This document shows, in pieces, positions 14,679 through 40,500 of a stretch of 64,000 bases of DNA. Made by a program: the position numbers and the translations under genes. Positions within the stretch are counted from its first letter, which is position 1, and each line of letters starts with the position of its first letter. The notes below the pieces were generated by a model that worked only from the letters and a program-made list of their open reading frames with translations, searched no databases and was not told where the DNA came from. The DNA lies in IMG/VR virus record IMGVR_UViG_3300024358_000009, positions 62,001 through 126,000 of that record; one strand, given 5' to 3'.

Positions 14679-17663
14679 TTATCTTCCTCTTACATACATA
14701 GTTATGCTACCGTTTTTTACACCTTCGGTAAATGGTATAGCCAAAAAGATATTGTTATTTAACTCAAGGTTATTAGCTGTATACAGTGTAAAAGGAGTTG
14801 CTGTAGAATAAGTGGTATAACCGCTTATATACATAGGTAAGGTTTTATCTAATCCAGGAACTTTTTCTATAAAAAGATTAATTCCTGAATTTATTGGCAT
14901 AGCACCAGTAAATGTCTCATCAGTTTTCATACTAAGTGTTAAAGTATTTGATTTTAATTCATAGCTATTCTTTAAAAACAATGATCTTGATGCATTTGAG
15001 CTAGGAAGATCTGACTTTAAAAACATGTTAACATTAGAGCTATATTTAAATGTGTCGTTTATTTTTATAAACAAGTTCATCACTTTATTAAATACAGTTC
15101 CATCTATATACAAACTCTTTCCTGCTATTATTTGAGATATTCCAATTCCGGCAGAATTGATAAATAAAGGTAAAGAATTAATTACACTGACTGGTTCTTG
15201 AGCTTTTAAAAATAGTGGAATTTTTATATTTCTTGGTTCGCCACTTATATATAAATCTTTAGCATTATTAATACTATTATAGCCCCTAACAAATAATGTT
15301 CTTGTTGGACTTGAACTTGGATTTAATTGAGTTGAATGACCAGTAACAAATAAGGTTGTATCTACATTAATAGCACCATAAACAAATAATGTTTTAGAGC
15401 CAACTATGTCTGGTGGCAATTGAGCAATTAATGCAAGTCCAGGATTCGGATTAGTGTTTATAGCTGGGGTTTTATAAATATCGTAACCTTTTATAAATAA
15501 AGTTGTGCTATTTATAGTTCTTGTATCTTCAACAATAGTAATTGGAGATGTATAAACTTTTAAATAAAAAGGAGTATTTTCATTACTTACTGAAACTAAA
15601 TCCCAATATACATTGTTTAATGCATAAGCTGCTGCTGGCTGTGAACCATAACCAGTTGCTAATCTAAAAAATGTAAACTTTGCAGTTCCAGATCCAGTTG
15701 ATGTTAAATCTAAATTTGGATTTCCGCCAACAAGTCTTGCTTTTGAAAATCTTGGTTTTGAAGATGTATAAGGATTTGATAATTGTCTATAAATTCCTTC
15801 ACGCCATGCTATAGAATTTAATCTTGGATCATTACTTACATTAGATTTAATCATAGATGTATAATAAACACCGTCTATTTTTGCTGTGTCAAAAAGTTCA
15901 TATTCTATATCCTCAGACCAAATTGCTGGATCTGACGATCCAACATTTTTTAAGTCAATTAATCCATTCGGCAAATCATTGCCTTCAATTTTTACTATAG
16001 TGGAAGACTGTGTTAAATAATTATCTATAACAAATTTATTGCTTGCGATTTCTATTGCGTTATTTGCTATGTCTACAGATTCATTTAAATTAATTGTTAC
16101 TTCAAAATTAACTGGATACTCATTAACAGTTTCTCTTTTCGCTTGAATGAAAACATCTGACTGACCCCATTGAACTGGATAATCATCATTAAATCCAAAA
16201 TATTGAATTCTATATGGATAATCAAATGTAGTTTTTACAATATCGTTTTTATAATATGTAGTTGATATATCAAATATATATTCATAAAAAGGCTCTAAGG
16301 TTTGTGCAGTAACCCAATATAAAGGAAATAAATCTGGTTGTTTTGGTTCTGAAGATGTGCTTGGACTTATAGCTATATAACTAATGCCGTCATAAAAAAC
16401 TATATCACGAATTGAATAATTAGAAGAAGATGACCAATCACCTTTCCAAGATGATAAATCAGAACTAAAAGAAGAAGAAAAAATCAATCTTATATCAAGT
16501 GATTCGCCTGTTGTTAGCGTACTCGATGTAAAATAAATATCTAAAGTGGCTTCTCCATTTACATAATTATATGTTGTTCTTGAATTGGTTGGAACAACAG
16601 AAATAGATTCTTGAGAAGATGGATTAACTTTTTGCCAAGATAGTATATAATTTAAATTATTTTGATATGCTAATTGAGAATCTACATCGTAACATCTAAT
16701 ACCTTCGGCATCCAACAAAGTTATTTTTATAGGTGGTTCTAAAAGAGGCACTTGTTGATAATTTTTAAGAAAGTAAGCTTGATTAGGAACATTATTTACT
16801 TTGATAAATTTTGGAGAAGAATAATTTCTGCCATTACCGTTATTGTATATTTTTGATAATTCTTCATCTGGTATATATACATTATAAATTCTTAACTCAT
16901 CTATGTTTAGATCAAATACAATATCATCATCTATACCTCCAAAATAAAATCTATCAATATAAGCATTTAATATTCCTGAATAAGAATAAAATGAATTGTC
17001 TATTAAACTTTCAAATTTATAATAAGTAAAACCGTAATATGTGTAAGAAAATTTAACAGGTGAGTATTCGCCAAATTTATTTCCATTTAAATAAAACTCT
17101 GTTTTGTAATAAATGCCAGCTTGTGCATCAGAAAATTGTTTTTGTCTTATAGTAAATAAATTCCAAGTGTTAGGCAAACAACTGTTAATACCACTGTTTA
17201 ATTCTATATCATTTAGTTTAGTTACTTGCCATGACCCATTTTCTAATGGCGTTCCTCTATAATGTTGTAAAATAACAAGAATAGAGTTATTTTCAGAGTC
17301 TTTTTGAATATAAATTGGATAATCTAGTGCTGATCCAGATGAGTATAATCTACCTATAACCGGAGATGATATTTCATCTTCCGTTAAGGTTTGAAACCAA
17401 AAAGATAATGTATACTCTTGTGCATATGCGTTCTGTTGAGAACCATATGGATTATACAAATAAAAGCCGAGAGATTGTCTGTCATATCTTGATCTAAAAC
17501 ATCTATTTAAATTAGTTAAGCCATCTTCAAAAGAAAAAGTTGGATCTGTAGTTGGAGATTGATAATTATATTGATATGTTCCATTATATGAAAGAACTCT
17601 AGATGCTAGAGGACCAGTATTAAATAAATTATCTTCACAAGCAAATCTATCTGTTAGTGCCAT
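14679..17663 (-). CDS. Tail-associated protein with LamG/ConA-like domain, CBM-like modules and C-terminal beta repeats
   Basis: YTLSFWF...WNLFTI...IDELRIYN....DEELSKIYN (LamG_3 pattern). WKGDWSSSSNYSIRDIVFYDGISYIA module. Repeated (L/M)(F/Y)(I/V)xG units. Confidence 0.7.
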   Translation of the reverse strand: MALTDRFACEDNLFNTGPLASRVLSYNGTYQYNYQSPTTDPTFSFEDGLTNLNRCFRSRYDRQSLGFYLYNPYGSQQNAYAQEYTLSFWFQTLTEDEISSPVIGRLYSSGSALDYPIYIQKDSENNSILVILQHYRGTPLENGSWQVTKLNDIELNSGINSCLPNTWNLFTIRQKQFSDAQAGIYYKTEFYLNGNKFGEYSPVKFSYTYYGFTYYKFESLIDNSFYSYSGILNAYIDRFYFGGIDDDIVFDLNIDELRIYNVYIPDEELSKIYNNGNGRNYSSPKFIKVNNVPNQAYFLKNYQQVPLLEPPIKITLLDAEGIRCYDVDSQLAYQNNLNYILSWQKVNPSSQESISVVPTNSRTTYNYVNGEATLDIYFTSSTLTTGESLDIRLIFSSSFSSDLSSWKGDWSSSSNYSIRDIVFYDGISYIAISPSTSSEPKQPDLFPLYWVTAQTLEPFYEYIFDISTTYYKNDIVKTTFDYPYRIQYFGFNDDYPVQWGQSDVFIQAKRETVNEYPVNFEVTINLNESVDIANNAIEIASNKFVIDNYLTQSSTIVKIEGNDLPNGLIDLKNVGSSDPAIWSEDIEYELFDTAKIDGVYYTSMIKSNVSNDPRLNSIAWREGIYRQLSNPYTSSKPRFSKARLVGGNPNLDLTSTGSGTAKFTFFRLATGYGSQPAAAYALNNVYWDLVSVSNENTPFYLKVYTSPITIVEDTRTINSTTLFIKGYDIYKTPAINTNPNPGLALIAQLPPDIVGSKTLFVYGAINVDTTLFVTGHSTQLNPSSSPTRTLFVRGYNSINNAKDLYISGEPRNIKIPLFLKAQEPVSVINSLPLFINSAGIGISQIIAGKSLYIDGTVFNKVMNLFIKINDTFKYSSNVNMFLKSDLPSSNASRSLFLKNSYELKSNTLTLSMKTDETFTGAMPINSGINLFIEKVPGLDKTLPMYISGYTTYSTATPFTLYTANNLELNNNIFLAIPFTEGVKNGSITMYVRGR

Positions 17664-20600
17664 TATGCTGTTCCTATATCTCTGAATATATCAGCTTGAG
17701 ATATCGCTCCGCCAGTAGTACTTTCTAAAGCCTTAACAATTTTAGACATAGTATTAGAAACAACTGTATTAACTTCACCAGCAAAATTAGGAGAATCTAT
17801 CTTAATATTAGCATTATTTTCAACGGTTATATTACCATTAATTTCTTCAGGAATATTTATTTTCGCCAAATCATTAATCGCTGATTGTAACCTAGTTATT
17901 GATTCTCCCATAGACTTAATACTACTATCAAATTTATTTACTCCGCCATCAAACATTTTTACAGAATCCGAGAAAGACTTTGTATCTATTTGATCTAACT
18001 TTTGTGCAGAAGAAGATTTAGTGACTTTATCAAATAACCTATCTCCTCCAGCTATTCCACCGTCAAAAAATCTTTGTTCATTTATGGCGTTTAAATTGCC
18101 ATATCCAATTGACTGAGCAGCTTGTGGATTTAATACAAACTCACCAGCACGAAGACGAGCCGGTATCATATCTCCATAACTAGCACCATTTACATATCCG
18201 CCAAAAGCAAAACCTTTTGGTTTATTTGCTGGATCTAACGAGTTTAAGAAAAATCTTTGATTAAAACCCAATCCTTGCTCTTCAGCTTGTCCGGCAGCCT
18301 GAAATGCTATGTCCGATCCTGGCAATGCATTAGCCATTTCGTCTGGAGTTAAATCTGGCATAAATCCCTTTCCTCTTATAAAATCGCCAGATATTTGCTT
18401 GTCCGTTATATCGCCAATAATATTTAGTCTATTTTTATTTTCTCTTCCGGCTGCTTCTTGAATAGAATCAACATCGCTACGCCTTAAAAAGATGGTTTGC
18501 GTTCCTATTTTGTTAAAAACAGTATCATCAAATCCTGTAACTCTTTGGAAATCATCGCTACCATAAAATCCTTTAATTTTTCTATTTTTCATATAATTAA
18601 TTATCGATGCTTTTATTTTTTCTGGAATAACTACATTGCCTTTAATTCCAACAATGTCTTTAAAATAACTTGGATCTATATCCTTTCTGTCTTTTAAGGC
18701 AGCTGGTTTATTCTTTTCATCTGCAAATGCTTTGATTTCAGCAAGATCAAAGTACTTTTCCGCTTCTTTAAAACTGTCTCCTTTATTTCTTTTTCCAAAT
18801 CTATCAAGGCTAACTAAACCACTTACAATTCCTGTATATCTCTTTTCTGCATTCACTAATCTTTGAATATCTCTAGCTTTTTCTATATTTTTTCTAGCTT
18901 CTTCTGGGGTTGTTTCAAAATCTTTGGCCATTCCTAAGTCAAGTTTATTATTATCGTTTGTTGGTAATCTCAACATTAATTTAAATATATCTACTTCTCT
19001 ATCTATAAGCTGAGGTCTAAACTGACTCCTTCTATCTTTTTCTTGTTTAACAACATTGAATCGTTCCATAGCTTTTTCATCTTTAACATTGTTAGCTTGT
19101 ATTGCATCTATATAATCCTTAAAAATATCAAATTCAGTATTAAATTGTTCTGATTTCACTATTCGTAAATTATCAAAACTCCACGAGTAAATATCAGTTT
19201 CCTCAAGTCTGTCTTTCTTTTCCTTGAATTTATTTGCAGCAACAGCTGTTAAGCCAGCTATATTTAAACCTGATTCAAGTGGATTAAAAGAAAAACCAGC
19301 AGCCACATCGCCACCTTCTGCACGATAAATAAGACCTCCATTTGCTCTAAAGCCAGCACCTAACCTTCTCTTTATGTCTTCCTCTTCTTCTTTTTTAGCC
19401 TGTTCTTTTTCTAATTTTTTAAAAGCATCATTTAATAAATCAAACTGATTTTTTTCTAAACCTTTTCCTCTGTTGCCAAAAGGTGGTTTTTGAGACTGCT
19501 CAGTTAATTGTTGCTGCTTTCTTGCTTGATTAGCTATCCATTCTCTTGTAAGTTGATCGCCAACCTCTTCATTAGTCATTCTTTGTTGACTAGGTGCTTT
19601 ACCACTAAATAAAGCATTTAATCTATCTTGTTGTTCCTTAGATTGTTCTTGCTCAAGAAATTTTTTACCGCCTTCAATTAATAATTGAAATTGATCTCTT
19701 GTTAATCTTTTATTTTTATCAAGTTCTTTATTTTTAGCTTCTCTTTCATAAAACCCTATTGGCAAAGAATAAGCTAAATCTCTTCCAATGGTTGGATCAT
19801 TTGCATACTGTTCTCTTAGTGTATAAGCTCTAAATAAAGGATGAAACGGACTATTTAATATATTTTGATCTTCTCTAGCTTGGAAGGCTTGTGCTAATAA
19901 CCCACCACCCTGACGATAAACTACTCCTCCAGCACTCAAACTCTTTAACAACCCCATATTCTTTTCTGTAGATGCTCTATTAACTACATATGAACCAGCT
20001 TCTAAATATTGAAATTCAGTGTCCGTTCCTCTACTTAATGGATGAGATTTTCCACTAGATTTAACAATGTTAACTCCACCGCCACCTTTTCTATAATTAA
20101 TATCATTCAAAAGAGATAGATTGTTTTTAGCAATTTGTGGTGGAATGACTGCTTCGCCTGGCGTAAGCATGGTTGGAATCATACCTCCGCCATTTCTTAA
20201 TAAGAGATTATTTCTAAATTTCTCCCGAAATCCATTATCATCAAGGTATTTTAAATAAGATCTAAGCCTCAAGCGTTCTTTTGAAACAAGATCTTTTTGT
20301 TCAAGTTCATTCAAAACATCTATACCACTAACACCGTTATGTCTTTCAGCTAGAAATTCTTTATGTTCTTTTGATTGTATCCAAGCTTCTTTAAGTTCAT
20401 AAATCTTGTCATACATTTCTTGTGAGTTTTGCGGAGCTTTCCATTCAAAAACTTCATCAACCTTTGGCTTTTCTTGTTGAATAGCAGCTGCGTTTGCTTT
20501 TTCTTTTGCTAATTCTGGTGGAATTTTAAGTTTAAATGGTTCGGGTGGAACCGAAGGTGTTATCAATTGTTGTGGAGCTTGAAGTTTGTCTTCAACAACT

Positions 20601-23600
20601 GGTTTTGGTTTGATTTGTACCTGTGCAGCATTTGCTTGATTTTTTCTAAAATTCTTTACTACTTCAGATCTAATAAAATTATTAATTTCAGAATTCATTT
20701 GTGAAATTAATTCATCTGCATCCTTTTTAGTTGCATCAAAATAAGGACGAGCATAACTAACCTTATCTGCATGTTTATAAATATTTGAATAATCACCAAC
20801 TAGTTTATAAGACTTTTCATAGTATGGGAATAACTTATCTTTTAACTTTGTAAGTCTTATATATTCTGGATTATTTTCGTCTAAACCATTATCGCTCATA
20901 AAGTCATTTAGACCTATTTGAGAAAATGGAATAGGCAAATCATTACGAAGATTTTTTAATTCATAATCATTTATTGTATAGTCAGTGTTTTTAAAACCCT
21001 TTTTAAGTGGATCTTCACCTTTTGATAAAGCATCACTAAAAGAATAATACTGCCTATAATTTCTTATAAGTTTTTCTAATTCTTTTGATACTAACTCTTC
21101 TCCAACTGGCATAGCCCCATCTTTTTTAACAGCTTCCGGTTTAGCTAATTCAGCCTTGTTTAAAACTCTCATCGCTATTAAATTAGTAGCTTCAGCAGTT
21201 AATTCAGAAGCTAATTTATCTCTACCCTGAAAAGATGTTAATGGATCATTTGGATCTTTAAAACGAAGTGCATTTCTAAATTGATAGTATTTACGCAAAA
21301 CACCAAGGGATGGAATTATAGAATCAATACCTTCTTTTTTATATTCATCTATAGATTTTTCGTTAAGATCAAATTTATCAAACTCCGCATAAATTCTTGG
21401 ATCATCTATGTCAGAACCTTTTTTCTTAACAGAAGCTATTGTTTTTGCTAATTCAACATGAAATCTTTGAGACAAAGTGTTTAAATTATCAGCACTTGGA
21501 TCTTTTGCTATTTGACTAATTTTCGTAGATAATTTAGCTCTATCTTCAACTATTTTTTCAGCATCATTTCTAGCTTCTTGATCTGCTATTCTCCTAGCTC
21601 TCTTCTCTTCAATTTCTTTTCTTTGTGCTTCCACTTTCGCTCTAGAAGGAATAACGAATTGACTTCTATCAACTTCTTCTATTCTGCCGGTTTTTGGGTC
21701 AACTTCAACAGCTGTAAGTTCTCCTAAATCACTAAAACTTTGATCGTAAATCGGGCCTATATTAGTAGTTCTACCTGTAAATTTTTTTGGTTTGCCATTC
21801 TCATCTATTACTATTTTACCATTCTTATCTTTTTCTATGTATTCTCTTTTTATGACAGATGGAGTATTTCCAGTTCTAGCATTTTCATCTAAGTGAAAAT
21901 TGCCATCTTTATCTTTTCTGGCAAATTGCACTTTTGGTTTTAATTGCTTTTTTTGAAAAGCTAAATTCTCATTTTCTCTAGCTCTAGCTAAAGGAATATT
22001 CATCAATGGCATTTGTCTTGTTGCATTTGGATCATTATGAAAAGCTATTTCATTTTCTGCATAAGTAGTTGTACCAGTAAGAATTTCATTAAAAACTTGT
22101 TGCTGTTTATTTTTAAAAAATTCTCTGTATTTTAAAGTTTGCTCAATTAAAGCTTTTGCTTCTTTATTTGGATCATTATTAAAATTATCAGCTTGAATGT
22201 CGGCGAGAAATCCAGATGCATTTTTATCTCTTGGACTTAAATTCATCATTTCTGCTTGCCACCGATTAACTCTTCTGCGATTCATTAACCAAAGATAAGC
22301 AGCGTCTTTATTTAAATCATTAAGATTAACTTTTGTAGATGAGAATGGATATCTTGGTGCAAAAGAATCTATTTTTAAAATATTATTTTTTTCTGAATTA
22401 CTAAGACCATTAAATACATCATTAATATTTTTAGCTGATGGTAAGTTATCGAATTTTTCAGAAGCACGAACATATAATTCCATCATGTATTCGTTTAGTA
22501 AGTCTTTATTATTGAAAACTTCATTAGCACTTAAATAATCAGAAACGGATCTCTCAAACTCATCTCTAAAATCTATTAATCCATACCTAACAGAATTTTT
22601 TAATTCAACATCTTTACTTGTTATACGATTTAAATAAGCTTTAAATTCAAAGTCTTTATATAATTCTGGATTTATTCTTTTAATGTTATACGGTGTTTTA
22701 CTTTCAGAAGTTGTTTTTTTACCTTTATCAATATAAAATGCCACTTCATTTTCAACGCCACCCATAGATCTGATAAGCGGATCTATTCTAGGATCGTTTC
22801 GTTCTGCCTTCTTGGGTCTTAATTGTATTCCTCCTTCAGCCTTATAATTAACTCCGCTATTAATAGCATTTAATAAAGGAAGATTATTACGAGTTGCATT
22901 TGCATTAACAATAAATTCATCATTAGCAATCATTGCTATGTTATCTTTACCTTTTGCCAGTCCTCCTTCTGAAAAATAACTTACTAATCCGCCAAAAGCT
23001 TTTTCTTCTGGTTGAATGGTTATTTTTTTAATTTTTTTGTTTATTTCTTCTAATTGATTAACTAAATTAATAAGTTCTTGCCCTATTCTTCCAAATGGAA
23101 TTTTTATATCTTTTAATTTTTCTAAATCATTAATAACCGATTCCATTTGATCGCTATCGCCAAAACCTGACTTCCTAGCCTCTCTTAAAATAGATTGTCT
23201 AATTCTATCTGGTATATTTTGTAACCCCAAAGAAGATTGCAAATTTTCTAAAGCTCTTATTTGTTCTGGGGATTTAAATTCTTCTTTTGTGCGATTTTGT
23301 ATGTTTCCAAAATCTCGTATGTCTGCTAGTGCTTTTTCAAATAAATTTTTATCAAAATAACGATTTGTTATTCGCAAATCCTTATCATATTTAGATGATA
23401 TTAATGAACTTTGTAATTTATTTAAGGCATCGATTACTCCTCCATCTTTAAAACCAGCTTTTTTTATAGATTCTTTATCAAATTCTTTAACTTCTAATAA
23501 ATTTTTCGCTCCAGATTGAGCATTTAATGCAGTTTGAAGATTTGGCCCTCTTTTAAATAAAGAAGCAAAATATCCCTGTTCTGTTTCACTCATGCGATCA

Positions 23601-26600
23601 GCTTGAACATTAAAAGCATCTTTATTTGATAAACCTAATTCTTTATATACATCTTCTAAATTTTTTACTGCTGTTAAATTTTCTCCGGCTCGAATATCTG
23701 CAAAATCTTTTCCTTTGTCTTTTCCTGCTATAATACCAATTTGATTTTCTAGCGAAGCTCTTTGTGCTTCTAATGGCTTTCTTTGTTCTACAGAAAATGT
23801 TTCTTTTAAATCTTTAATAAATTTATCAGCTATCTCCTGCATCCTTTTCGTAGAATCTTGACCATTTTTGATTGCGTCAGAATATAACTTAGCTGCCTCT
23901 TCTTGTCTTTTGGCTATAGCAAGCATATCGGCTCTTGCTTGATTTGACTTTTCTTCTTCTGTTTGAATGTTTAGTTGTGGATAAGCTCTTTTTAAAGCCA
24001 AATTTTGAATTTGTTCGCCTGTCTTTCCTCCAAACTCTGGAAGTCTTACATTTTTAAATGTTTCTGTAAATTGAACAAACTCTTTTCTTCTTTTTAAACT
24101 CAATCCAGATATATCAGCACCAGCAGCAACATCTTGTGCTATGCCTCTTCCACGCTCTAGTTCCTTAAGCTGTCTCTTGTCCATAGTAAACATAGATCTT
24201 GCAGCACTTAACTTAGCCTCTCTTTGCTGCTCTGCATCGGCTAACCTTCCTTGTGCCTCTGTCATAGAAATTGTTTCATCTCTTAGATTCTTTAAAGCAT
24301 CAGATAAATTAGAAATTCTATCTCTGATATTTTGATTGGCTAAAGCTAATTCCTGTGCTTTTTTTCTAGCGTTTTCATCAGCATTTGCCAAATCAGTAAA
24401 ACTACCTTTTAATTCTTCGTCAGACTTTTTCAATTCATCTCTGGCAACCATTAAATCTTTGAAAATTGCCTGTGGATCTAATATATCTGCCTTATTAACA
24501 TTGGTATTTTCTAAAAGTTGTCTTTGTCTAATCAATAAAGGCTGATTAATATCTTCAGTTTTTAGAAAATCGCTAATAGGTCTTCCTGTTTGTGCTGATT
24601 GTATTTCAGCTTCTATCTTTTTAACATTTAAAGATTTTTCATTTAAAACCACTAATTCATTCAAATATCTATTTTGTTCATCGGATATTCTTTTTAAACC
24701 GTTGATGTATTCTTGACCAACAGAATTAACAGCATTGGCTAATTGCTGATTTGTTTGATTAAATTGATTAGCGTACTGATCTAAAGCTTTTTTAGTTAAT
24801 GCAAAAGGATCAAAATCTTTGCTTTGTCGTGTTAGTGATTGTCTACTTTTTTCTAATAAATCTTCTATATTAGCTGCAAATCCTGAAAACTCTGGTGCTT
24901 TAAGATCTATTTTTTGTTCTTTTAATATTGCCTGTAGTTCTTTAAACATTCCTTCGCCAGCTATTGTGCCAAAATCTTTATCTCTAGCTACTTGCAATGC
25001 AGCTGGAAGTGCTGTGTATAACTTATTTAGATTTAAAGCATTATTTTTTTGTTCTTTTCCAGCATCTCCCAATATTCCAAAAGTTTGATCTAAAGCTGAT
25101 CCAAATAAATTTCCTGGAGTTCCAATTTTTAATCTTTCTGAAATAACAGGTGCTCTAAATTCAGATCTTCTATCCATAGCATCAACAAAATTTGTTGTGG
25201 CCCTGCTCATATTTTCAAAGTCTTGAACTGATAAAGCGACGGCATTACCAAAAAATTCTAAAGACAAAGCTAATTTTTCTACTGATGCAACTGCATTTCT
25301 TTGCACTTCAGCTAATCTATCTGATTCAATCTTTCCTTTTACTAAGTTAAAAGCAAATTTATTTAACTCATCTCCAGATTTTCTAGAAGCAGCACCCAAT
25401 ATTTCAAAAAATGCAACATCCTTCTTTAAATCGGCAAATATTTTTTCTGCATTGAACTCGCCCCCAACAGTTCTTTGTTCAACCCTAGATAACAAAATTT
25501 GTGTAAGTGGTTGTAATGCAGCACCAAATCTTTCACTTAATTTGTCAGCAACTATTTTATTTACATCTCCGCCTTCTGCTTTTGCTTGCTCTCTAGCTCT
25601 TGACTGAAGGACTTTAAAATCAGCAAGAACTCTTATTAAATCTGCTTCTGATCTAGCAGTAAATCTTCCTGCTTCAGCCACATCTCTTAAACTGTCATTA
25701 ACTTTGTCTGCCGATTTTTGAAAATTTAATTTTTCAATTTCAGCAGCTGCTTTTTTAGAAGCACTGATAAAACTGGCTATTCCAGCACCGGCTATAATTA
25801 AGCCAGAAGCTAATTGACCAAGACCTGGTATAACATTAACAGCTATTGCTGCTGTGGCTGCTGCACCTAAACCAGCTGAAATACCAGAGCCAATAATATT
25901 TGTTGTCCTAGAAGTTCTTCCAGCACTAACATCTTCGGCAGTTCCAGCTGCATTTTCTAAATAATTAGCACCAAATGAAGCAGCGACAGAGGCAGCACCG
26001 ATGATGCCTCTTCCGAGACTAGATCTTTGAAAACCTGCAAATGTTCCCCTTAAACCACCTCCAGCATTTCTAATTTCATCTCTTAAATTGGCAAAAGCAC
26101 TTTTAATAGATTCAGCAGCGGAGTTAAATGAAACTCTAAATCTTCCAAAAAACCCTTTACCCTGAGTTAAGTCTGTTGATATACCACGAAGATCATCTGA
26201 AACTTTTTTGCCAGATGTATTCATTTTTTGAATAACATCTTGCTCTAAAGACTCAAGACCAAATACACGGCCTTGTTTTTCTACGAAATTTGCATTTTGT
26301 TGAACTGCTTGTGCATATTTTTGAGTAGCAGCTTCTATCAAAATTTCTTTATCATTAATGCCAGTTATAATTTTAAGTTGATTGGCTATGGCTAATACGG
26401 CCTGTTGTTTAAACTTATTTTCTTCTTCTGTCAAAAGTCTTTGTTGTGTATATGTACCTATTGCTTGTTGTGCTTCTCTTGATGGAGCAATTTTGCCCAA
26501 TCTTTCTTCTGTTCTTGTGCTTAAAATATTGGCTAAGGACTCAGAACCTCTTCTGCCTTCTCCAACATTAAGAGGGGCTTTTTCTGCTGGTAAAAATCTA

Positions 26601-29593
26601 TAAACCTGTTCTCCAGTTGGTAATGCTTGAGCTTCTAATGTAGATGCTAAATTTGTTCTTTGAGTTTTTAATTCTTCCAATCTTTTTTCAGCAGTAATAA
26701 CGGCTGGATCTAAATTAGGATCTGCAAATGTAGAAGAAGTTCTTGCGGTTGCAACGGCAGAAGTTGTTGTTAATATTTTTTCATTTAATTTTTCGTACTT
26801 TCTCATTGTGGAAGTAGCAATGCCTTGTGCAGCTGACATAGCCTGAGAAGCACTGATATCTACTCTTTTTGCTCTTATTTGCTCATAAATAATATCTGTC
26901 AATATTTTAGTAGCTGCACTATACTGATCTTCTTCAGAGCCTGTTTGTGCAGAAACAAGTGTGCTTAAATCAAATTTTCTATTCTTAAAAATCTGACCTT
27001 GTTGTTGGGCGGTTATTAAAAGTCTAGGATCTATATCTCCACCAGCAGCAAATCCAACTCTTCCTCCTAATGCAAATTTTCCAAACTTATTCATTCTATC
27101 TAAGTTAGAAGAACCGATTGAAGAAGCAGAACTTGGGCTAAATACAAATTCGCCTGGAGTTAATAAAGAAGGAACTCTTCCTCCAGAAGCAAATCCTTTT
27201 CTTGCCATATTAGATAAATTATCTGCACCAATCTTTGATACAGAAGATTTTCTAATTACAAAAGAACCTTCTTCCAAATCCATTGGAACACTATCACTGT
27301 TACCAACTCCTGGAACTATGAATCCGCCATCAGCTTTTTTTCTTTTTTTAGGAAATGTAATAATATCAGAATTTTTTTCAAAATCGGCTGGTCTATTAAC
27401 TTTTGCTATATTAGCTATATCTTTTGCATAAACTCTTGATTCCTTATTTATAATATCAGCTGCTGAAACAACACTTCTTTTTAGTTCTACATAAACGCTT
27501 TTTTTATTTCCTAAAATTTTATTAATAGCTTCCTGATTAGGTTTTCCATTTTCATCTTTTATAAATTTTGATAAATTTTCAGATGTTGAAAAAGAATCAA
27601 TTGGGAAATTGGCTTCTGTAGATGCTTCTTTTGATTTTGTTCTTTTATTATAATAATATTCAAATATATATCCTTCTAATTGATTTTGTCCATTTGTGTC
27701 ACTATTAATTATTCCTTTTACTATTTCTGGACCTCTTGTTTTTCCGTATCTATCATTTATTTTTTTTCTATTTACAATATCTTTTGATTCATTAATTAAA
27801 TTTGTAGCTTCATTTTTAATCTTTTCACTTAACTTTGAATCGCCTATGCCTGGATTATAAGTAAAAACTGGTATATCAGTATCTTTGATAGAAATTTCTT
27901 GTCCATAAACATAAGCTTTAATAGCACTATCACTTTGAATTCTTCCATCTTTGACAGTTGCTTTTGGACTTTTTACTCCTTCTCCTGGTTTAAGTAATGT
28001 TACTTGTATTACATTTCTTAAATTTGGACTTTTTTTTCCAGACTGATAATCTTCTAAATTTATAACTCCACCAGCTGCAAATCTTTTTGGTATTACAACT
28101 TCACCTGGTTCAAGTAGTGCAGGAACAATATCTCCACTACCAGTTCCTGGTACTACTCCACCTCTTTTCATTTTTACAACGCCACCATCAGCAAATCTAT
28201 TTTGATTAAATATCTTTGGGTTTGGACTTGCCGTGATACCAGTGCTAAAGCCCTTTACAAACTGGCCTATTCCAGTAGCAACTTTTACAGCTGCCAAAGC
28301 ACCAACTAATGGTATCAATGGCTTTAAAGCATCTGCCAATTGAATTGCAGCACTAGCACCAGAAATAAATGTATCAAATAGTTTTTGAAAACCGGTAGAC
28401 TGAGTTATAGATCTAATTAAAGCATTAAATTCTTCCTTTAATTTTTGTAATTTAACCGCATAAGCTAATTGAGCCTGACCAGCATTTTGAGTTAATGATC
28501 CAGCACCAGCAATCGCCACATTAACAGCTTTTTGACTAACAGCAAATTCTTGAATAAGAGGTATGACTTTAGAAATTTGTCTATAACCACCAAGCTCTTC
28601 AACTATCTGTGCGAATTTTGGATCTGTAGTTGGAAGTCCAGATAAAGCAGCAGAGAGTCTTCGTATGGCTTCGTAAGGACCAACAAATTGCTGTTCTAAG
28701 TTAGCATTTCCTAAAGCTAAAGCTTCTTCTCTTGTATATCTAAGTTGAACACCAACTTCTTTAAGGGCATTTACAGTATTTCCACGCTGTATTCTTGTAA
28801 ATATAGTTCTAAGACCAGTACTGATAGTTTCAGCACTTTCTCTTGTTGTCTGCCTTACTGATGTAAATAAGCCTAGTAATTCATTAAGATCACCACCAGC
28901 AGCCTTAAAAGCACCACCAGTTTTACGAATGGCTTCTACAATGTCTCCAGCTTCAACAGCGAATTCGCCAGCAACTGCATTAACAGCACCTAAAGCTCCT
29001 TCTAAATTACTTGCACCAATTTTAAACTGATTGAGAATTGCAATTGCACCTTCAGTCGTATTAGTGAAATTTTCAAAGTTAGGAGCCAATGCTGCTTTAG
29101 CCAAAGCTTCCAAAGCAATTCTAGTATCTGCGATTGATAAGTTAGCTTGTTTTAATGTTACAGCTGCTTGAATTAAATCTTTGCTTGAAACGCCTAAAGA
29201 TGTAGATAGTCTAGTTACTTCATCAACAACACCTTGAATGGCAGAACCAGTATCTCCAGAAACCTGAACCAACTTAACCATCTGGCGATCAAAATCTATA
29301 GCCTCTTCTGTACCTTTTCTAATGGCATTAGATAATGAAATCATAGATCCAGCAGCTAAACTAAAAGCACCAAACCTTTTTGCTGCCAAACCAGCTTGAC
29401 GACCAAAGCTTTCTACGGATGTGATTGCACCTTCAATGTCAGCTTTAATTCTTTTGATTGAATCGGCATTAGCCATATTCAAATCAATATTGACCTTTTT
29501 ATTTCCTAATTGTTTATTTAAATCGTTAGATATCTTAGTAGCTGCCCCAGAAGCTAGGGCAACATTCATTATAGCTGTAATATTAAAGGCCAT
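17663..29593 (-). CDS. Tail tape measure protein, 3976 aa
   Basis: N-terminal TMP core (AIDFDRQMVKLVQVSGD...GEFAVEAGDIVEAI...AETISTGLRTIFTRI), long Ala/Gln/Lys helical regions, repeated GG..G..D.(V/I)P..L..GE(F/V)V motifs, and position downstream of tube and chaperones. Confidence 0.9.
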   Translation of the reverse strand: MAFNITAIMNVALASGAATKISNDLNKQLGNKKVNIDLNMANADSIKRIKADIEGAITSVESFGRQAGLAAKRFGAFSLAAGSMISLSNAIRKGTEEAIDFDRQMVKLVQVSGDTGSAIQGVVDEVTRLSTSLGVSSKDLIQAAVTLKQANLSIADTRIALEALAKAALAPNFENFTNTTEGAIAILNQFKIGASNLEGALGAVNAVAGEFAVEAGDIVEAIRKTGGAFKAAGGDLNELLGLFTSVRQTTRESAETISTGLRTIFTRIQRGNTVNALKEVGVQLRYTREEALALGNANLEQQFVGPYEAIRRLSAALSGLPTTDPKFAQIVEELGGYRQISKVIPLIQEFAVSQKAVNVAIAGAGSLTQNAGQAQLAYAVKLQKLKEEFNALIRSITQSTGFQKLFDTFISGASAAIQLADALKPLIPLVGALAAVKVATGIGQFVKGFSTGITASPNPKIFNQNRFADGGVVKMKRGGVVPGTGSGDIVPALLEPGEVVIPKRFAAGGVINLEDYQSGKKSPNLRNVIQVTLLKPGEGVKSPKATVKDGRIQSDSAIKAYVYGQEISIKDTDIPVFTYNPGIGDSKLSEKIKNEATNLINESKDIVNRKKINDRYGKTRGPEIVKGIINSDTNGQNQLEGYIFEYYYNKRTKSKEASTEANFPIDSFSTSENLSKFIKDENGKPNQEAINKILGNKKSVYVELKRSVVSAADIINKESRVYAKDIANIAKVNRPADFEKNSDIITFPKKRKKADGGFIVPGVGNSDSVPMDLEEGSFVIRKSSVSKIGADNLSNMARKGFASGGRVPSLLTPGEFVFSPSSASSIGSSNLDRMNKFGKFALGGRVGFAAGGDIDPRLLITAQQQGQIFKNRKFDLSTLVSAQTGSEEDQYSAATKILTDIIYEQIRAKRVDISASQAMSAAQGIATSTMRKYEKLNEKILTTTSAVATARTSSTFADPNLDPAVITAEKRLEELKTQRTNLASTLEAQALPTGEQVYRFLPAEKAPLNVGEGRRGSESLANILSTRTEERLGKIAPSREAQQAIGTYTQQRLLTEEENKFKQQAVLAIANQLKIITGINDKEILIEAATQKYAQAVQQNANFVEKQGRVFGLESLEQDVIQKMNTSGKKVSDDLRGISTDLTQGKGFFGRFRVSFNSAAESIKSAFANLRDEIRNAGGGLRGTFAGFQRSSLGRGIIGAASVAASFGANYLENAAGTAEDVSAGRTSRTTNIIGSGISAGLGAAATAAIAVNVIPGLGQLASGLIIAGAGIASFISASKKAAAEIEKLNFQKSADKVNDSLRDVAEAGRFTARSEADLIRVLADFKVLQSRAREQAKAEGGDVNKIVADKLSERFGAALQPLTQILLSRVEQRTVGGEFNAEKIFADLKKDVAFFEILGAASRKSGDELNKFAFNLVKGKIESDRLAEVQRNAVASVEKLALSLEFFGNAVALSVQDFENMSRATTNFVDAMDRRSEFRAPVISERLKIGTPGNLFGSALDQTFGILGDAGKEQKNNALNLNKLYTALPAALQVARDKDFGTIAGEGMFKELQAILKEQKIDLKAPEFSGFAANIEDLLEKSRQSLTRQSKDFDPFALTKKALDQYANQFNQTNQQLANAVNSVGQEYINGLKRISDEQNRYLNELVVLNEKSLNVKKIEAEIQSAQTGRPISDFLKTEDINQPLLIRQRQLLENTNVNKADILDPQAIFKDLMVARDELKKSDEELKGSFTDLANADENARKKAQELALANQNIRDRISNLSDALKNLRDETISMTEAQGRLADAEQQREAKLSAARSMFTMDKRQLKELERGRGIAQDVAAGADISGLSLKRRKEFVQFTETFKNVRLPEFGGKTGEQIQNLALKRAYPQLNIQTEEEKSNQARADMLAIAKRQEEAAKLYSDAIKNGQDSTKRMQEIADKFIKDLKETFSVEQRKPLEAQRASLENQIGIIAGKDKGKDFADIRAGENLTAVKNLEDVYKELGLSNKDAFNVQADRMSETEQGYFASLFKRGPNLQTALNAQSGAKNLLEVKEFDKESIKKAGFKDGGVIDALNKLQSSLISSKYDKDLRITNRYFDKNLFEKALADIRDFGNIQNRTKEEFKSPEQIRALENLQSSLGLQNIPDRIRQSILREARKSGFGDSDQMESVINDLEKLKDIKIPFGRIGQELINLVNQLEEINKKIKKITIQPEEKAFGGLVSYFSEGGLAKGKDNIAMIANDEFIVNANATRNNLPLLNAINSGVNYKAEGGIQLRPKKAERNDPRIDPLIRSMGGVENEVAFYIDKGKKTTSESKTPYNIKRINPELYKDFEFKAYLNRITSKDVELKNSVRYGLIDFRDEFERSVSDYLSANEVFNNKDLLNEYMMELYVRASEKFDNLPSAKNINDVFNGLSNSEKNNILKIDSFAPRYPFSSTKVNLNDLNKDAAYLWLMNRRRVNRWQAEMMNLSPRDKNASGFLADIQADNFNNDPNKEAKALIEQTLKYREFFKNKQQQVFNEILTGTTTYAENEIAFHNDPNATRQMPLMNIPLARARENENLAFQKKQLKPKVQFARKDKDGNFHLDENARTGNTPSVIKREYIEKDKNGKIVIDENGKPKKFTGRTTNIGPIYDQSFSDLGELTAVEVDPKTGRIEEVDRSQFVIPSRAKVEAQRKEIEEKRARRIADQEARNDAEKIVEDRAKLSTKISQIAKDPSADNLNTLSQRFHVELAKTIASVKKKGSDIDDPRIYAEFDKFDLNEKSIDEYKKEGIDSIIPSLGVLRKYYQFRNALRFKDPNDPLTSFQGRDKLASELTAEATNLIAMRVLNKAELAKPEAVKKDGAMPVGEELVSKELEKLIRNYRQYYSFSDALSKGEDPLKKGFKNTDYTINDYELKNLRNDLPIPFSQIGLNDFMSDNGLDENNPEYIRLTKLKDKLFPYYEKSYKLVGDYSNIYKHADKVSYARPYFDATKKDADELISQMNSEINNFIRSEVVKNFRKNQANAAQVQIKPKPVVEDKLQAPQQLITPSVPPEPFKLKIPPELAKEKANAAAIQQEKPKVDEVFEWKAPQNSQEMYDKIYELKEAWIQSKEHKEFLAERHNGVSGIDVLNELEQKDLVSKERLRLRSYLKYLDDNGFREKFRNNLLLRNGGGMIPTMLTPGEAVIPPQIAKNNLSLLNDINYRKGGGGVNIVKSSGKSHPLSRGTDTEFQYLEAGSYVVNRASTEKNMGLLKSLSAGGVVYRQGGGLLAQAFQAREDQNILNSPFHPLFRAYTLREQYANDPTIGRDLAYSLPIGFYEREAKNKELDKNKRLTRDQFQLLIEGGKKFLEQEQSKEQQDRLNALFSGKAPSQQRMTNEEVGDQLTREWIANQARKQQQLTEQSQKPPFGNRGKGLEKNQFDLLNDAFKKLEKEQAKKEEEEDIKRRLGAGFRANGGLIYRAEGGDVAAGFSFNPLESGLNIAGLTAVAANKFKEKKDRLEETDIYSWSFDNLRIVKSEQFNTEFDIFKDYIDAIQANNVKDEKAMERFNVVKQEKDRRSQFRPQLIDREVDIFKLMLRLPTNDNNKLDLGMAKDFETTPEEARKNIEKARDIQRLVNAEKRYTGIVSGLVSLDRFGKRNKGDSFKEAEKYFDLAEIKAFADEKNKPAALKDRKDIDPSYFKDIVGIKGNVVIPEKIKASIINYMKNRKIKGFYGSDDFQRVTGFDDTVFNKIGTQTIFLRRSDVDSIQEAAGRENKNRLNIIGDITDKQISGDFIRGKGFMPDLTPDEMANALPGSDIAFQAAGQAEEQGLGFNQRFFLNSLDPANKPKGFAFGGYVNGASYGDMIPARLRAGEFVLNPQAAQSIGYGNLNAINEQRFFDGGIAGGDRLFDKVTKSSSAQKLDQIDTKSFSDSVKMFDGGVNKFDSSIKSMGESITRLQSAINDLAKINIPEEINGNITVENNANIKIDSPNFAGEVNTVVSNTMSKIVKALESTTGGAISQADIFRDIGTA

Positions 29594-29685: not shown

Positions 29686-30501
29686 TTATTCTTTATCTTC
29701 CTCAATTGGCTTGCCTTCATCATCCAAAAATGGAGTGAATTCAACAATATAATTACCTTCTTCATCCACTAAATTTCCTTCAATATCAACAAGTTTTCCG
29801 TCTTCGTTGATATATCGACCATCTTCATTAACAAGACGGCCTTCAGAGTCAACTCTACGGCCCTTCTTATCAATATAATTTAGCTGATCATCAACAAACT
29901 TATACTTCTTCAAGAATTCGTTTTCTGGAAGACGCTTTTCATAATCTGGGTCAATTCCATAAAGCATCATAGCCAAGTTAGAAGCTGCTGGCCCGATAGC
30001 TGGATCAATTTCTTTTGCAAGAAAGTCCTCATAAGACTTAAAGTATGGCTTGCCAGTATCATTAAATACAGTGCATGCCGAAACAAAGAAATTAAACTGG
30101 GCGTTGTCTGCCTGACCTTCAGCCGTATTATTATCAAGGCCAATACGGTCAGAATTAAGTGTGCGTAGTTCGGCCCTATAACGCTTCATCTGTAGGGCTA
30201 CTTCTTTTGCCTCACTAAGCTTAATACCGCCAGACTTAATTTTTCGCTCAGACTCGGCGATCTTTTCCTGTAGATCACGAAGTTGTTTTTGCTTATTATC
30301 ATCCCAAAGCTTCTGCTCTCGCATAACGCTTTCTACTTTAGCACGAAGAATACCGCCGGACTCAACGGCATCACGAAAGGCTTTATTATAAACCTTTTGT
30401 CCTTCTTGCTTTTGCTTGACAGTTGGACGCTGAACTGCAAGTTCAACTTCCTTATTATCAAGCGTTACTTTAAAAGTCCTCTTATTGTCAGGTGCACTCA
30501 T
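29686..30501 (-). CDS. Putative tail assembly chaperone
   Basis: 271 aa immediately upstream of the TMP. Visibly higher GC, like the capsid and tube genes. C-terminal D(x)xG(R/K/N)x(V/I) repeats. Confidence 0.55.
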   Translation of the reverse strand: MSAPDNKRTFKVTLDNKEVELAVQRPTVKQKQEGQKVYNKAFRDAVESGGILRAKVESVMREQKLWDDNKQKQLRDLQEKIAESERKIKSGGIKLSEAKEVALQMKRYRAELRTLNSDRIGLDNNTAEGQADNAQFNFFVSACTVFNDTGKPYFKSYEDFLAKEIDPAIGPAASNLAMMLYGIDPDYEKRLPENEFLKKYKFVDDQLNYIDKKGRRVDSEGRLVNEDGRYINEDGKLVDIEGNLVDEEGNYIVEFTPFLDDEGKPIEEDKE

Positions 30502-30869
30502 GACGATCCTCCTTTAGAAAAATTTCGAGTGTAACCATCCCAAGAAACAGAGTATTGGTCTATCTCAGCTTCCATAGCCCTAAGCTGATTATTTCCGTTA
30601 TTTAATATTTCTGCTCTACACAATTCCCAAACATTTTTCCAGAACTTTTTATCAGCAATTAAATCTTCTTCATCGTCTGGGAAAATCTCCCAAAGTTCAC
30701 TGAAATGTTTTTCTACAGCAGAAAGAGCACCTATAAACGATGTTCGCATTTTTGTTTTAGAGACTTTTTTTAATTTATCCTTAGACAAAAAATAATGTTT
30801 TTGAGTTAACTTTTTTTCGTCTTCCTTATTGATCTTAGACGCTTTTTCAAAATTATCGTAAACTCCCAT
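30498..30869 (-). CDS. Hypothetical protein (tail assembly region)
   Basis: 123 aa, RBS gagg, ATGA overlap with the next gene. Confidence 0.6.
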   Translation of the reverse strand: MGVYDNFEKASKINKEDEKKLTQKHYFLSKDKLKKVSKTKMRTSFIGALSAVEKHFSELWEIFPDDEEDLIADKKFWKNVWELCRAEILNNGNNQLRAMEAEIDQYSVSWDGYTRNFSKGGSS

Positions 30870-36776: not shown

Positions 36777-37586
36777 TTAGTTCCCCTTTAAATCGCTTAA
36801 TATAGTTCCTGGAGGTTCATAATTTGCAAAAACATAAAAATATCTAGGTCCAGTGTTTTGATAAGACAATTCATGATCAGCAAACCCAAAATTTTGAACT
36901 CTTGTTTCTGGTAATTGTGCAGTTTCTAAATAACTCCATTTCGGCCCTTTTTCCATTCCGTTAAAAATAGCTGCGTCAAAATTTATTGGGTTTCTTACTT
37001 CTAGGTTTCTTTTGTCAATTGAACCTGTATAACAATTATGTGCACCCAAAGGAATTCCCTCTGGTAGTTCAAACTTTAAATAGTTTACATTTGTTAAATC
37101 GGTCAAACTTTTCCATCTATCAAAAGGAAAACCATTAGTTGAAGCACTAATAAATTTTTCTAAACTTGGATCTCCTAATGTATAATAGTACTGTTTACTT
37201 TTTGGATCTTTTCCTGCGTTACATTCATATAAAAATGATATGTATAAAAAAGGTTTTTCTTCTAAATAATAAAATTTAAAATAAATACTTGTTTTAAATC
37301 CGACTTCCTTAACTAATTCCTCTGGACAACAACCAATAGGATGTCCTGATGAAAAATTTTGATCGTAAATCATAATATCGACATTTGATTTTCCATAATT
37401 TGAATTTTTTATATACTGTTTTGTCTGTGGAAACTCGTAGTAAAATTGATGATTAAAATCTCTTGGGTTAAAATTTAAATTTTTATTTTTTAAAAAAAGC
37501 CAAGATGGACTTTGTGATCTCCAATTGAATCTTGGATCTGTAAAGAAAAATCCAGCTGTTAAATTATAAACTTTGTTGTTTAACAT
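36777..37586 (-). CDS. Hypothetical protein
   Basis: 269-aa ORF coupled to both neighbours. No family recognised. Confidence 0.6.
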   Translation of the reverse strand: MLNNKVYNLTAGFFFTDPRFNWRSQSPSWLFLKNKNLNFNPRDFNHQFYYEFPQTKQYIKNSNYGKSNVDIMIYDQNFSSGHPIGCCPEELVKEVGFKTSIYFKFYYLEEKPFLYISFLYECNAGKDPKSKQYYYTLGDPSLEKFISASTNGFPFDRWKSLTDLTNVNYLKFELPEGIPLGAHNCYTGSIDKRNLEVRNPINFDAAIFNGMEKGPKWSYLETAQLPETRVQNFGFADHELSYQNTGPRYFYVFANYEPPGTILSDLKGN

Positions 37587-40500
37587 TATTTTCGTCCTGC
37601 TGCAACATAAGGTGGTTTATTTGGCTTGCCATTAAACTCTCCAGTTGCCCAATCTAAATAAGCTTGTTCTGCCGTAAGGTTTTTGCCTGGTATACTATAA
37701 AAACAAATATCTTTAGAGATGTTTTGCTCTCCGGTTACTTGATATTGTTTTTGCTCTCCTTTGACATTTACATTAACTGTATCTAATGAATTTCCTGGAA
37801 TAGATTGCAAGCATCCATCTTCATCTATGTATGTTTTGTATTTAATAGTCATTTGTGCACAAAAACCAACTTCTTTTGGTTGTTGTACAACTTCACCATT
37901 AACCAAAGCATTTTTAACATTTGATTTACAAAAATTACAAGGTTCAAGTTTGCCTCCAAAATTATCTATGTTTGTATCTGTGTAAGGAGGAGTTGCAAAT
38001 TTTTGTCCATTATAATCTCTTTGAACACAAGGAGGTTTTGGTTCATTACCACGCCTTAAATTATCTACAACTACAGCTGGATTGCCTGGTTGTGGTACTC
38101 CAGCTATACCTCCACCACCACCAAAACCACCACCACCTAAACCAAGACCTCCTAAACCACCTAATCCGCCTAAACCGCCTGGATAACCATATCCACCGCC
38201 AAAACCTCCTGGTCCTGGTCCTGGAGGCAAACAGTCTAAAAGACCTGGAGTTCCTCCATAAATAGCATGTTCACATATTTTTTTAATTCCACAAGCTGTA
38301 TTTATAAGTATAGATTTACAACATTTATTAACTATATTAGTTATAATTCCATAAACACCTCTTATATAAAAAGTATATACTTCTTCTCCTGGTGGACATG
38401 ATCCATTAACAGGATTAGTTCCGGTTGGTAATGGATTTGGTGGTTGTGGGCGTGTAGGACCAGTAACAGGATTTGTAGAATTAGTACCAATAACACCTGG
38501 GCCAACAGCATATGGTTCTGGTTTAACCAAAGGACTGTCTGGGTTAATAGCTAAAGCAGAAGAATTAAAATTATCATCTGGATCTTCAGCACCTTCTGGA
38601 TTTGCTAAATCTTGCGAAGGAACTATTTCTCCAGTAGGATTTCCATCTTCATCTACATAAGGTCTTCCAGTCGCAGGATCTATTTGTAAGTTATAAGTTA
38701 AATTATTAAAATTTGAAACAGTTGTACATTTTCCATAAGAAAGCATGAATGGATCAACATTTTTAATGTTTGCTGACCAATGAGACATAATGTCAGCTTG
38801 CGTAACTGGTGCTATATTAGATAAAGATGTTAATAATTCTCCCCATTGAGCAGCACTAATAACCATGCCCTGACCTTCTGCCATAGCTGAAGGAGAACCA
38901 TTAAATCCAATAAGATTTTCACCACAAGGACCATTCTTTTCTAGAATAGCTTGTTGTAATGAACCACTCATATTTGAACTACTGAATGGGCCTACAAGCG
39001 GAACATAATCGCCTTCGTTATATAATTCATTTGGCTTATTTATTGAAAAATATTTTTTAGGATCTGTTTCTTTTCCATGAAAGTAAGAAGAACATGCTTG
39101 TCCAACTAAACTAGCAGCACTATCAATAAACTTGCTTCCGTTATTTCTATTTAACCAAAGACCTTTTAACAAACACGGTCCAAAACCAAAGTTAACAGCT
39201 GAATTAGTTCCATTTAACATATTTCCTATTTCAAGCGTGTTATGATTACCTATAAGTGCTATAGTTCCATTTTTAAATCTATGTAAACCAACTTCTGATT
39301 CTGGATCTGGATAATAAACCTCACATCTTGGATTACAAATTGCACCAGCTACGAAATTTGGTAACCAACCAGTATCTCCAGATATATTTACAGAACCTCT
39401 ATAGTATGGGTCTGGTCCATAAAGAAAACCACGCTCATATGGATCGTTATAAAAACCAATAGTATTAAAAGTTACAACTAAGAAATTAGAATAACCATCT
39501 TCTTCATTACCTCTTCTTGTAAAAGCAGGACTTAATATAAAATAAGCTGTTTGTGCAGAAAATGTGTAGCCTTCTGGGGTTGTATATTTACTTGTTTTAC
39601 AACCAGTTTTTATGTGTTCATCAATTTTTATATTTAATGAATCAGTGATTGGATAAGAAGGTTTTCTACAATTTGTAGCATCTAAATGAGGAACTGGAAA
39701 AACATTGCTATTAGCTAAAACATTTGTTAACGCAAAATAATTTCTTTGTGCCTCTAATAATCCCATTGCAGACGCAGATATTGATGGTAACACAACGCCA
39801 AAATCTGGATTATTTTGTGCTGGAAAATCACCGCAATTAAAAAGATAAGATGTATCACTTCTGTCGGGACTTCTAATATCGTGAATATTTGTTCCATGAA
39901 CTGAATGTTTTAACTGAGTAAATCTTAACCAAGATCTTCCAATTCTACCCTTTTCTTTTTGTGAGTAGTTCCAATAACAAACGGTATTCGACATAACTGG
40001 ACCACCAGAATTATTTACTGGATCGCCAATGTCATTTTCAATAACTTTTCTTACATAACCACCAACAGTTATATAGATTTTACCATTTCTAAATGTAATT
40101 CCATCGGGCATTTTAAGAGCAGTACCAGAAGGACCAACGGTTGTAGTTGTTCCTCCCGGCCCTGTAGTTGTTGTAGTAGCTGTAGTCGTGGTTGTAGTTA
40201 CAACAGGAGGTAATGGAGGACGATTAATACTTATTTTTGTTGTTGTTGTTTGAGTATTTGGTGTTGTTGTAGTAGTTGTTATTAAACCTGTGCAATCTGG
40301 TTCTAATGTAATTCTTGTGGTATTATTATATTCAATATTTGTTCCGCCTATATGCCTTATTTCTTTTAACATACCTCTGATATTATATATATTTCCTATA
40401 GAGTATGCATCTAATGTTTGGTATATAGAAAGAGGGTTTTTAGGATTATAACTTGCAGCAACATAGAAAATCGGATTTGAATTTTGTCTTGTCAAAGTTG

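Follow-up and report, generated by a model that had tools for sequence, protein, structure and literature searches.

The 64,000-nucleotide (nt) stretch analysed here (positions 62,001 to 126,000 of IMG/VR virus record IMGVR_UViG_3300024358_000009, hereafter the window) carries on its minus strand a gene for a 3976-amino acid (aa) tail tape measure protein (TMP), within which seven copies of a ~55-aa motif (R1 to R7) alternate with blocks of other sequence (B0 to B5). The explanation that we favour, with a probability of roughly 0.6, is that a river phage with a long tail and a ~206-kb genome encodes this giant TMP, that its motif copies bound variable slots and that the first of these (slot 1, from R1 to R2) delivers effectors in the family to which the protein belongs. 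This proposal starts from four observations, namely the identity of the TMP, the repeats and their homology to a motif of other phages, the pattern of conservation along the protein and the presence of ADP-ribosyltransferases in slot 1 of relatives. The reading of the TMP as a cargo carrier is partly supported, in that it holds for slot 1 at the level of the family, while the case for cargo in this particular protein is weak.

In the proposed plan, four parts would be combined in one polypeptide: a conserved TP901-type N-terminal core, a C-terminal module consisting of the last motif copy and a helical tail of ~125 aa anchored in the tail tip, a classical helical and membrane-active middle (B2), and 2-9 Gly-flanked copies of the motif, which would bound slots with a fast turnover. 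Slot 1 would be the effector slot, occupied in this protein by a family-specific domain with an E/D/ExK signature and in some relatives by ADP-ribosyltransferases. The motif itself may dock or order the chain within the tube, or be a site of cleavage. Ejection of TMPs ahead of the DNA and their anchoring by the C-terminus are established (PMC12617516, PMC13033339, PMC11445458). Since TMPs leave the tail before the DNA, blocks embedded in them would reach the host envelope or cell, and since their C-terminus is at the tip of the tail, the slot nearest the N-terminus would exit last, beside the DNA end.

A giant tape measure protein and its family

The gene at 17663-29593 is an uninterrupted open reading frame (ORF) with zero stops under translation table 11. 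Its product matches PF10145 at aa 125-336 (E-value 7e-23, 81.9 bits for a cut-off of 33.2), TIGR01760 (65.2 bits for a cut-off of 28.8) and the tape-measure PHROGs 4211 (E-value 4e-25) and 28. The locus of the closest relative, which we call P0003 and which served as the reference for all segment identities, has the same gene order and gene sizes, with proteins of 341, 123 and 271 aa upstream and of 994, 501 and 1146 aa downstream. The family matches, with which the conserved gene order is in keeping, identify the protein by homology as the tail TMP of the phage, a member of the TP901 family, and thus bear out what the initial annotation had read from this single ORF.

A giant ORF might also be an artefact of assembly or annotation, be it a chimera of several genes or a frame read with the wrong genetic code. 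The source record is a 206,326-bp virus graded complete by CheckV, the DNA of which is present in ~20 riverine metagenome runs, and the phage is known from metagenomes alone. Over positions 18000-23900, the contigs of four riverine runs are identical, one contig covering the entire stretch without differences, and the identical protein is also recorded from a separate 149-kb contig, which argues that the ORF is real. The assembly may itself derive from these riverine runs. The genes beside it read normally with table 11, its architecture is common to 120 relatives and nothing was found in favour of an artefact, the probability of which we consider negligible. In three of the four riverine runs, there are contig breaks at 22175-22204, 22591-22620 and 22961-22990 (in B3a and the N-terminal linker of R4). 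At these short unitig breaks, alternative continuations of low depth hint at nothing other than minor population variants, located at or near a repeat.

Metagenomes contain a large family of giant TMPs that share one plan, and the protein is a member of it. A word search returned 267 relatives, and the family figures given throughout cover the 120 among the matches listed. These are 2193-6291 aa long, come from contigs of at most 226 kb and all have 2-9 motif copies. Across the family, the median start of the first copy is at aa 484, right behind the core (B0), which is conserved in all 119 relatives. The last copy is followed by a tail with a median of 123 aa, as in phage lambda. The protein is thus far longer than a typical TMP, as had been annotated, yet it is not unprecedented. 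Its length also brings to mind the Thermus phage P74-26, which has the longest known tail (nearly 1 µm) and shows that extremely long tails exist (PMC10034513).

Motif copies as islands of constraint

Copies of the motif were located in three ways, with a regular expression, with a hidden Markov model (HMM) built from the seven copies and with an independent family profile of 102 copies. The family profile finds exactly seven copies in the ORF (E-values from 7e-24 to 8e-12) and none elsewhere in the 206-kb genome, and all seven overlap the places where the initial annotation had put its repeats. With the seven-copy HMM, 593 matches were obtained in the 120 relatives, as opposed to 4 in shuffled sequences. 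The family consensus reads FAxGGxVPGxGxxDTVPAMLTPGEFVxxKxAAxxIGxxNLxxMNxxxxAxGG, and its flanking glycines are among the best-conserved columns (G4 and G52 are invariant, G51 is kept in at least 90%). The short GG linkers that had been noticed along with the repeats are equally real, since 14 occurrences of [FYL]xxGG were observed when 3.1 were expected, the maximum in 1000 shuffles being 10.

Alignment with P0003 reveals an uneven distribution of conservation. The core, R1, the R2+R3 and R5+R6 tandem pairs, R7 and the C-terminal tail (B5) are 59-92% identical, B1 and B2 38-46% identical (Table 1). Up to aa 1970, B2 is 33-46% identical to its closest relatives, with no match beyond this point; no collinear match in P0003 was found for aa 1971-3127, which includes R4, and none at all for aa 3234-3584. 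Even between close relatives, the blocks differ in length (1157 versus 1465 aa, and 351 versus 220 aa). At the DNA level, similarity to P0003 is found at aa 1-533, 749-1120, 1758-1893, 3134-3222 and 3791-3974, and most of these islands begin or end at a repeat. When all relatives are considered, 212 of the 357 internal ends of high-scoring segment pairs fall within 20 residues of a repeat, for 53 expected, although non-independence of the relatives raises this count. Outside the TMP gene, five of the six neighbouring proteins that could be compared over their full length are 75-91% identical to their counterparts in the P0003 locus. Judged from these alignments, constraint is concentrated in the repeats, which form islands around hypervariable slots. 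The motif copies are under strong purifying selection, and turnover of the slot contents is far quicker than that of the remaining genome.

How the slots might change is a separate issue. The initial annotation had pictured swappable domains, spaced by repeats that would favour recombination. Comparison of the blocks among relatives, for which it had called, found them not invariant (38-46% identical to P0003 or unalignable with it), and their hypervariability relative to the genome background fits the picture. For B3 and B4, however, the sampled phages give no sign of exchange, since B3 has no relatives and B4 has only weak ones. Related phages may exchange sequence at the conserved copies. 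Homologous recombination between copies inside the gene is, by contrast, unlikely because the DNA that they share within it is too short (26-33 nt at 67-88% identity), and the idea of recombination-friendly spacers inside the gene had to be given up. Likewise, an origin of the protein as a series of duplicated tape-measure units was rejected at the sequence level; no such chain is recognisable because internal similarity is restricted to the repeats.

The motif in ordinary tape measure proteins

No Pfam or NCBIfam model, PF09718 included, matches any of the repeats of the 3976-aa protein, even at E-values of up to 10. When PDB sequences were searched with a motif profile (A1), lambda gpH (8iyk_H) was matched at residues 732-787 (E-value 6.6e-8), with the GG, GEFV, IGxxNL and GG columns aligned. 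Mycobacteriophage Douge gp16 was matched twice, at 963-1033 and 1411-1460 of its 1699 aa (E-value 1e-13), and the 1158-aa chain 8rk3, which we take to be gp46 of Pseudomonas phage JBD30, was matched once at 1015-1087 (E-value 9e-4). The profile also matches several tape-measure PHROGs and, among named phages, TMPs or TMP-like virion proteins of Rhodococcus, Pseudomonas, Ralstonia and cyanophages. These profile matches mark the motif as an old and widespread element near the C-terminus of ordinary TMPs, and not as a new signal. What is new is its multi-copy layout, which is common to all 120 giant relatives examined. No description of the motif was found in the literature on tape measures.

A further occurrence is in Synechococcus phage S-CREM2 (OR473000.1, 2855-7552), a cyanomyophage, where the motif is found in a 1565-aa virion protein annotated as 'endolysin' that adjoins baseplate hub genes. 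The motif is hence not confined to the tape measures of siphophages.

The closest parallel in layout is lambda gpH (C-terminal fragment gpHC), in which, as in this TMP, the motif has Gly-rich flanks and is followed by a short tail that ends in the tail tip. However, gpH has one copy in 853 aa instead of seven in 3976 aa, it has no inserted non-helical blocks and its core is that of a different TMP family. The two copies of Douge gp16 and the single one of 8rk3 are also far fewer than the seven here. No ADP-ribosyltransferase or signature domain between copies is reported for Douge and JBD30, and the papers on these phages do not discuss the motif (PMC13033339, PMC11445458). The structures known for the TMPs of lambda, Douge and JBD30 show no more than the final 32-42 residues, which lie in the tail tip, and the motif region is disordered (PMC12617516, PMC13033339, PMC11445458); for the latter two phages, it is the last 33-42 residues that are resolved, in the baseplate (PMC13033339, PMC11445458). 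By analogy with these resolved C-termini, B5 is presumably the tail-tip anchor. As for what follows ejection, lambda gpH leaves the tail and forms a trans-envelope channel (PMC12617516).

Slot 1 and its proposed effector domains

In the family, slot 1 measures from 145 to 1813 aa and its contents fall into 20 sequence clusters. The slot of relatives holds ART-PolyVal (PF18760, E-value 7e-25) or ADPrib_exo_Tox (PF03496) domains, enzymes of a type described from polyvalent proteins, an ADP-ribosyltransferase being present in only ~16 of the 120. A second domain, defined by a G..FE / P.D / (E/D).K signature and referred to here as the E/D/ExK domain, is found in 57 of the 120, this protein included, and always in slot 1, where relatives carry it together with an ADP-ribosyltransferase. 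The signature residues in this protein are E645, D666, E703 and K705. In an alignment of 56 sequences, the D is invariant and the G, E and K are kept in at least 90%. The order of these residues resembles that of the PD-(D/E)xK nuclease signature, a likeness that fold comparison did not confirm. On the strength of this domain content, we take slot 1, which adjoins the N-terminal core, to be an effector slot of the family. No paper describing a TMP fused to an ADP-ribosyltransferase was found in the literature.

The initial annotation had gone further and described the whole protein as a polyvalent cargo carrier. Polyvalent proteins generally have a head-associated domain, such as MuF, as their anchor, whereas the carrier here would be a TMP. 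The likeness lies in their being giant virion-delivered polypeptides with effector domains, injected via the phage tail along with the DNA (Iyer et al., 2017; PMC5512222), and relatives of the protein studied here do carry ART-PolyVal. That article never mentions tape measures, the word 'tape' being absent from its text (PMC5512222). Unlike in polyvalent proteins, no embedded processing peptidase and no confirmed effector domain were found in this protein, where PF10145 is the only significant match, so that several unrelated effector domains in one polypeptide, a feature of the class, are missing. What stands of the claim is therefore the ADP-ribosyltransferases in slot 1 of relatives, and what does not is cargo of a recognisable kind in the protein's own blocks. 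A second parallel is with TMPs that have embedded enzymes, such as T5 pb2 and those with peptidoglycan hydrolases, in which the TMP brings a catalytic domain into the host envelope. Cleavage near the C-terminus is also seen in T5 pb2 (PMC12617516). The known inserts act on the cell wall, whereas the relatives here carry ADP-ribosyltransferases in a motif-bounded slot.

A number of results weigh against effector delivery as an explanation for this protein. Scans of every block against Pfam, NCBIfam and PHROG gave no significant domain outside the core. For the E/D/ExK domain, neither Pfam scans of 56 members nor a PDB profile search gave a match, apart from a single weak one to Tox-REase-7 (E-value 0.075), and the word search gave no stand-alone homologue. 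An AlphaFold2 (AF2) model of the B1 core has a predicted local distance difference test score (pLDDT) of 64, with only two strands modelled, and found no fold match (the best Foldseek hit has an E-value of 1.9 and the best VIA-align hit a Z of 3.9). A match of B1 to LPD14 is below threshold (19-20 bits for a cut-off of 27), and an ESM Atlas feature search of B1 and B3 gave no usable match. The AF2 model of aa 455-865 is poor (pLDDT 44), and the repeats appear in it only as a short strand and two helices. B3 had 0 matches at E-values of up to 1e-3 among 1.84 billion protein representatives, and B4 matched only itself at database-scale significance, besides weak matches of B4b (aa 3585-3794) in the closest relatives. 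What this leaves is one putative signature domain and two orphan blocks, the latter of which would equally fit fast-drifting filler. Finally, the few-nm lumen of a tail tube has little room for three to six chains with folded domains.

Cargo or length filler

These points lead to the main rival of the effector-slot proposal, a purely structural giant tape measure. In such a protein, great length would simply go with a long tail, the motif would be a periodic structural element, for instance a contact with the lumen or a chaperone or a device for trimer registration, the blocks would be length filler under low constraint and the ADP-ribosyltransferase insertions of relatives would be exceptions. 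The number of motif copies indeed rises with protein length (rho 0.79), at ~1 copy per 1000 aa, as expected of a structural element, ADP-ribosyltransferases are confined to the minority of relatives given above and very long tails such as that of P74-26 are known (PMC10034513). B3 and B4 behave as filler might, the former having no relatives and the latter only weak ones in its closest kin, neither with a domain match, and helix-forming residues are about as frequent in B3 and B4a (45-54%) as in the core.

The distribution of helical sequence points the other way. Our statements on secondary structure are based on composition and on the 100-degree periodicity of the hydrophobic moment, which are crude methods. 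The periodicity of amphipathic helices is evident in the core, B2 and B5 (z-scores of 3.4 to 6.4), but not in B1, B3 and B4 (-0.2 to 2.1), which lack the periodicity of bona fide TMP helices and are richer in aromatic residues than the TMP parts (9% in B3). Non-helical blocks between the repeats, as annotated initially, are thus supported for B1, B3 and B4, but B2 is classical helical tape-measure sequence. Length filler also fits poorly with a conserved, non-helical signature domain in slot 1 of 57 relatives and enzymes in that of others, or with the different block lengths of close relatives. We see the structural alternative as possible but on the unlikely side, and continue to prefer motif-bounded slots with an effector slot behind the core.

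Some details of the blocks complete the map in Table 1. B0 ends in a hydrophobic segment (aa 422-444). B2 has a hydrophobic Gly-zipper segment (aa 1233-1279, nt 25757-25897) and, at aa 2048, a GFKDGG linker that stands by itself. B4 contains extra FRANGG/YRAEGG linkers near aa 3416-3428.

Table 1. Map of the 3976-aa tape measure protein. Positions in nt are those of the window; identities are to the closest relative, P0003.
Feature	aa	nt	Strand	Identity	Evidence and remarks
Whole ORF (P0001), tail tape measure protein	3976 aa	17663-29593	-		PF10145, PHROG 4211/28, TIGR01760
B0, conserved TP901-type core	1-465	28199-29593	-	92%	PF10145 at aa 125-336; z 6.4
R1, repeat copy 1, directly behind core	466-525	28019-28198	-	78%	Regular expression, seven-copy HMM, family profile
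B1, slot-1 block	526-751	27341-28018	-	39%	E/D/ExK signature; domain core aa 631-729 (nt 27407-27703)
R2, repeat copy	752-807	27173-27340	-		Regular expression, HMM, family profile
R3, repeat copy	799-853	27035-27199	-		Regular expression, HMM, family profile
R2+R3, tandem pair	752-853	27035-27340	-	85%	
B2, classical helical tape-measure region	854-2196	23006-27034	-	38-46%	Composition, periodicity
R4, repeat copy, most degenerate	2197-2260	22814-23005	-		HMM, family profile
B3, orphan block, not amphipathic-helical, 867 aa	2261-3127	20213-22813	-		No relatives, no Pfam/PHROG match
R5, repeat copy	3128-3176	20066-20212	-		Regular expression, HMM, family profile
R6, repeat copy	3172-3233	19895-20080	-		Regular expression, HMM, family profile
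R5+R6, tandem pair	3128-3233	19895-20212	-	62%	Isolated island of DNA similarity
B4, lineage-specific block, 561 aa	3234-3794	18212-19894	-		Self-match only in word search
R7, last copy	3795-3850	18044-18211	-	59%	HMM, family profile; positional counterpart of lambda gpH 732-787
B5, helical C-terminal tail	3851-3976	17666-18043	-	71%	z 3.8

A possible role in processing

Another alternative is that the motif, with its [FY]xxGG flanks, is a proteolytic site and the protein a polyprotein, which would be cut at the copies during maturation or ejection and whose blocks would thus be freed. The initial annotation had hinted at processing or translocation signals, and there is circumstantial support, by analogy, for a role of the motif as a processing site. 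Lambda gpH is cut in a Gly-rich region around aa 690-730, just upstream of its motif copy at 732-787, and both the site and the catalyst of this cut are stated to be unknown (PMC12617516). Polyvalent proteins, too, are thought to be processed (PMC5512222). In the giant TMPs, the invariant or nearly invariant flanking glycines of the motif and the enrichment of the short linkers would be in accord with such a scenario.

Taken to its conclusion, this scenario would make the motif a recognition or cleavage element of tape-measure processing in general, including that of gpH to gpH* in lambda, and giant TMPs tail-borne polyproteins whose cut pieces, ADP-ribosyltransferases and the nuclease-like domain among them, would precede the DNA into the host. 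However, the 3976-aa protein matches no peptidase family, and a search of the 206-kb genome brought up neither a JAB nor an NlpC/P60 (lambda gpK-like) gene. Moreover, strong conservation extends over the full 55-aa unit, which suggests more than a cleavage site. We regard cleavage at the copies, and likewise its extension to lambda, as distinctly improbable.

Genes around the tape measure gene

None of the ORFs neighbouring the TMP gene has a significant family match. Directly downstream (14679-17663, minus strand), the 994-aa protein is 41% identical to its counterpart in the P0003 locus and has weak tail-fibre and CBM_5_12 matches; it is likely to be a protein of the distal tail or tip that contacts the host and evolves at a pace like that of the inner blocks of the TMP. 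Just upstream, ORFs of 123 aa (30498-30869) and 271 aa (29686-30501), both on the minus strand, overlap by 4 nt and are kept at exactly the same lengths in the P0003 locus, with no family match found. They are candidates for a pair of tail assembly chaperones.

Further upstream of the tail module, three minus-strand genes (51553-58305, 45522-48467 and 58299-60359) encode proteins of 2250, 981 and 686 aa with collagen triple-helix repeats, two of them also having CBM_5_12 carbohydrate-binding modules. These are probably long tail or head fibres. In the same strand block, at 37586-45529 (minus strand), a 2647-aa ORF with no Pfam match at E-values of up to 1e-3 and without the tape-measure motif encodes another giant protein.

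Concluding remarks

For this protein alone, the gain in knowledge is modest: its domains can be mapped with clear limits, and two of its large blocks are orphans. The significance of the finding lies rather in the family. TMPs enter the host before any other phage protein. The multiplication, up to nine-fold, of the motif near their C-terminus in giant TMPs makes it a concrete candidate for an element of tape-measure processing or docking. In addition, the family is evidence that the lumen of the tail can be a delivery route for enzymes of host takeover, and, if the motif were to prove a processing element, there would be a second, tail-lumen route by which polyvalent effectors are delivered.

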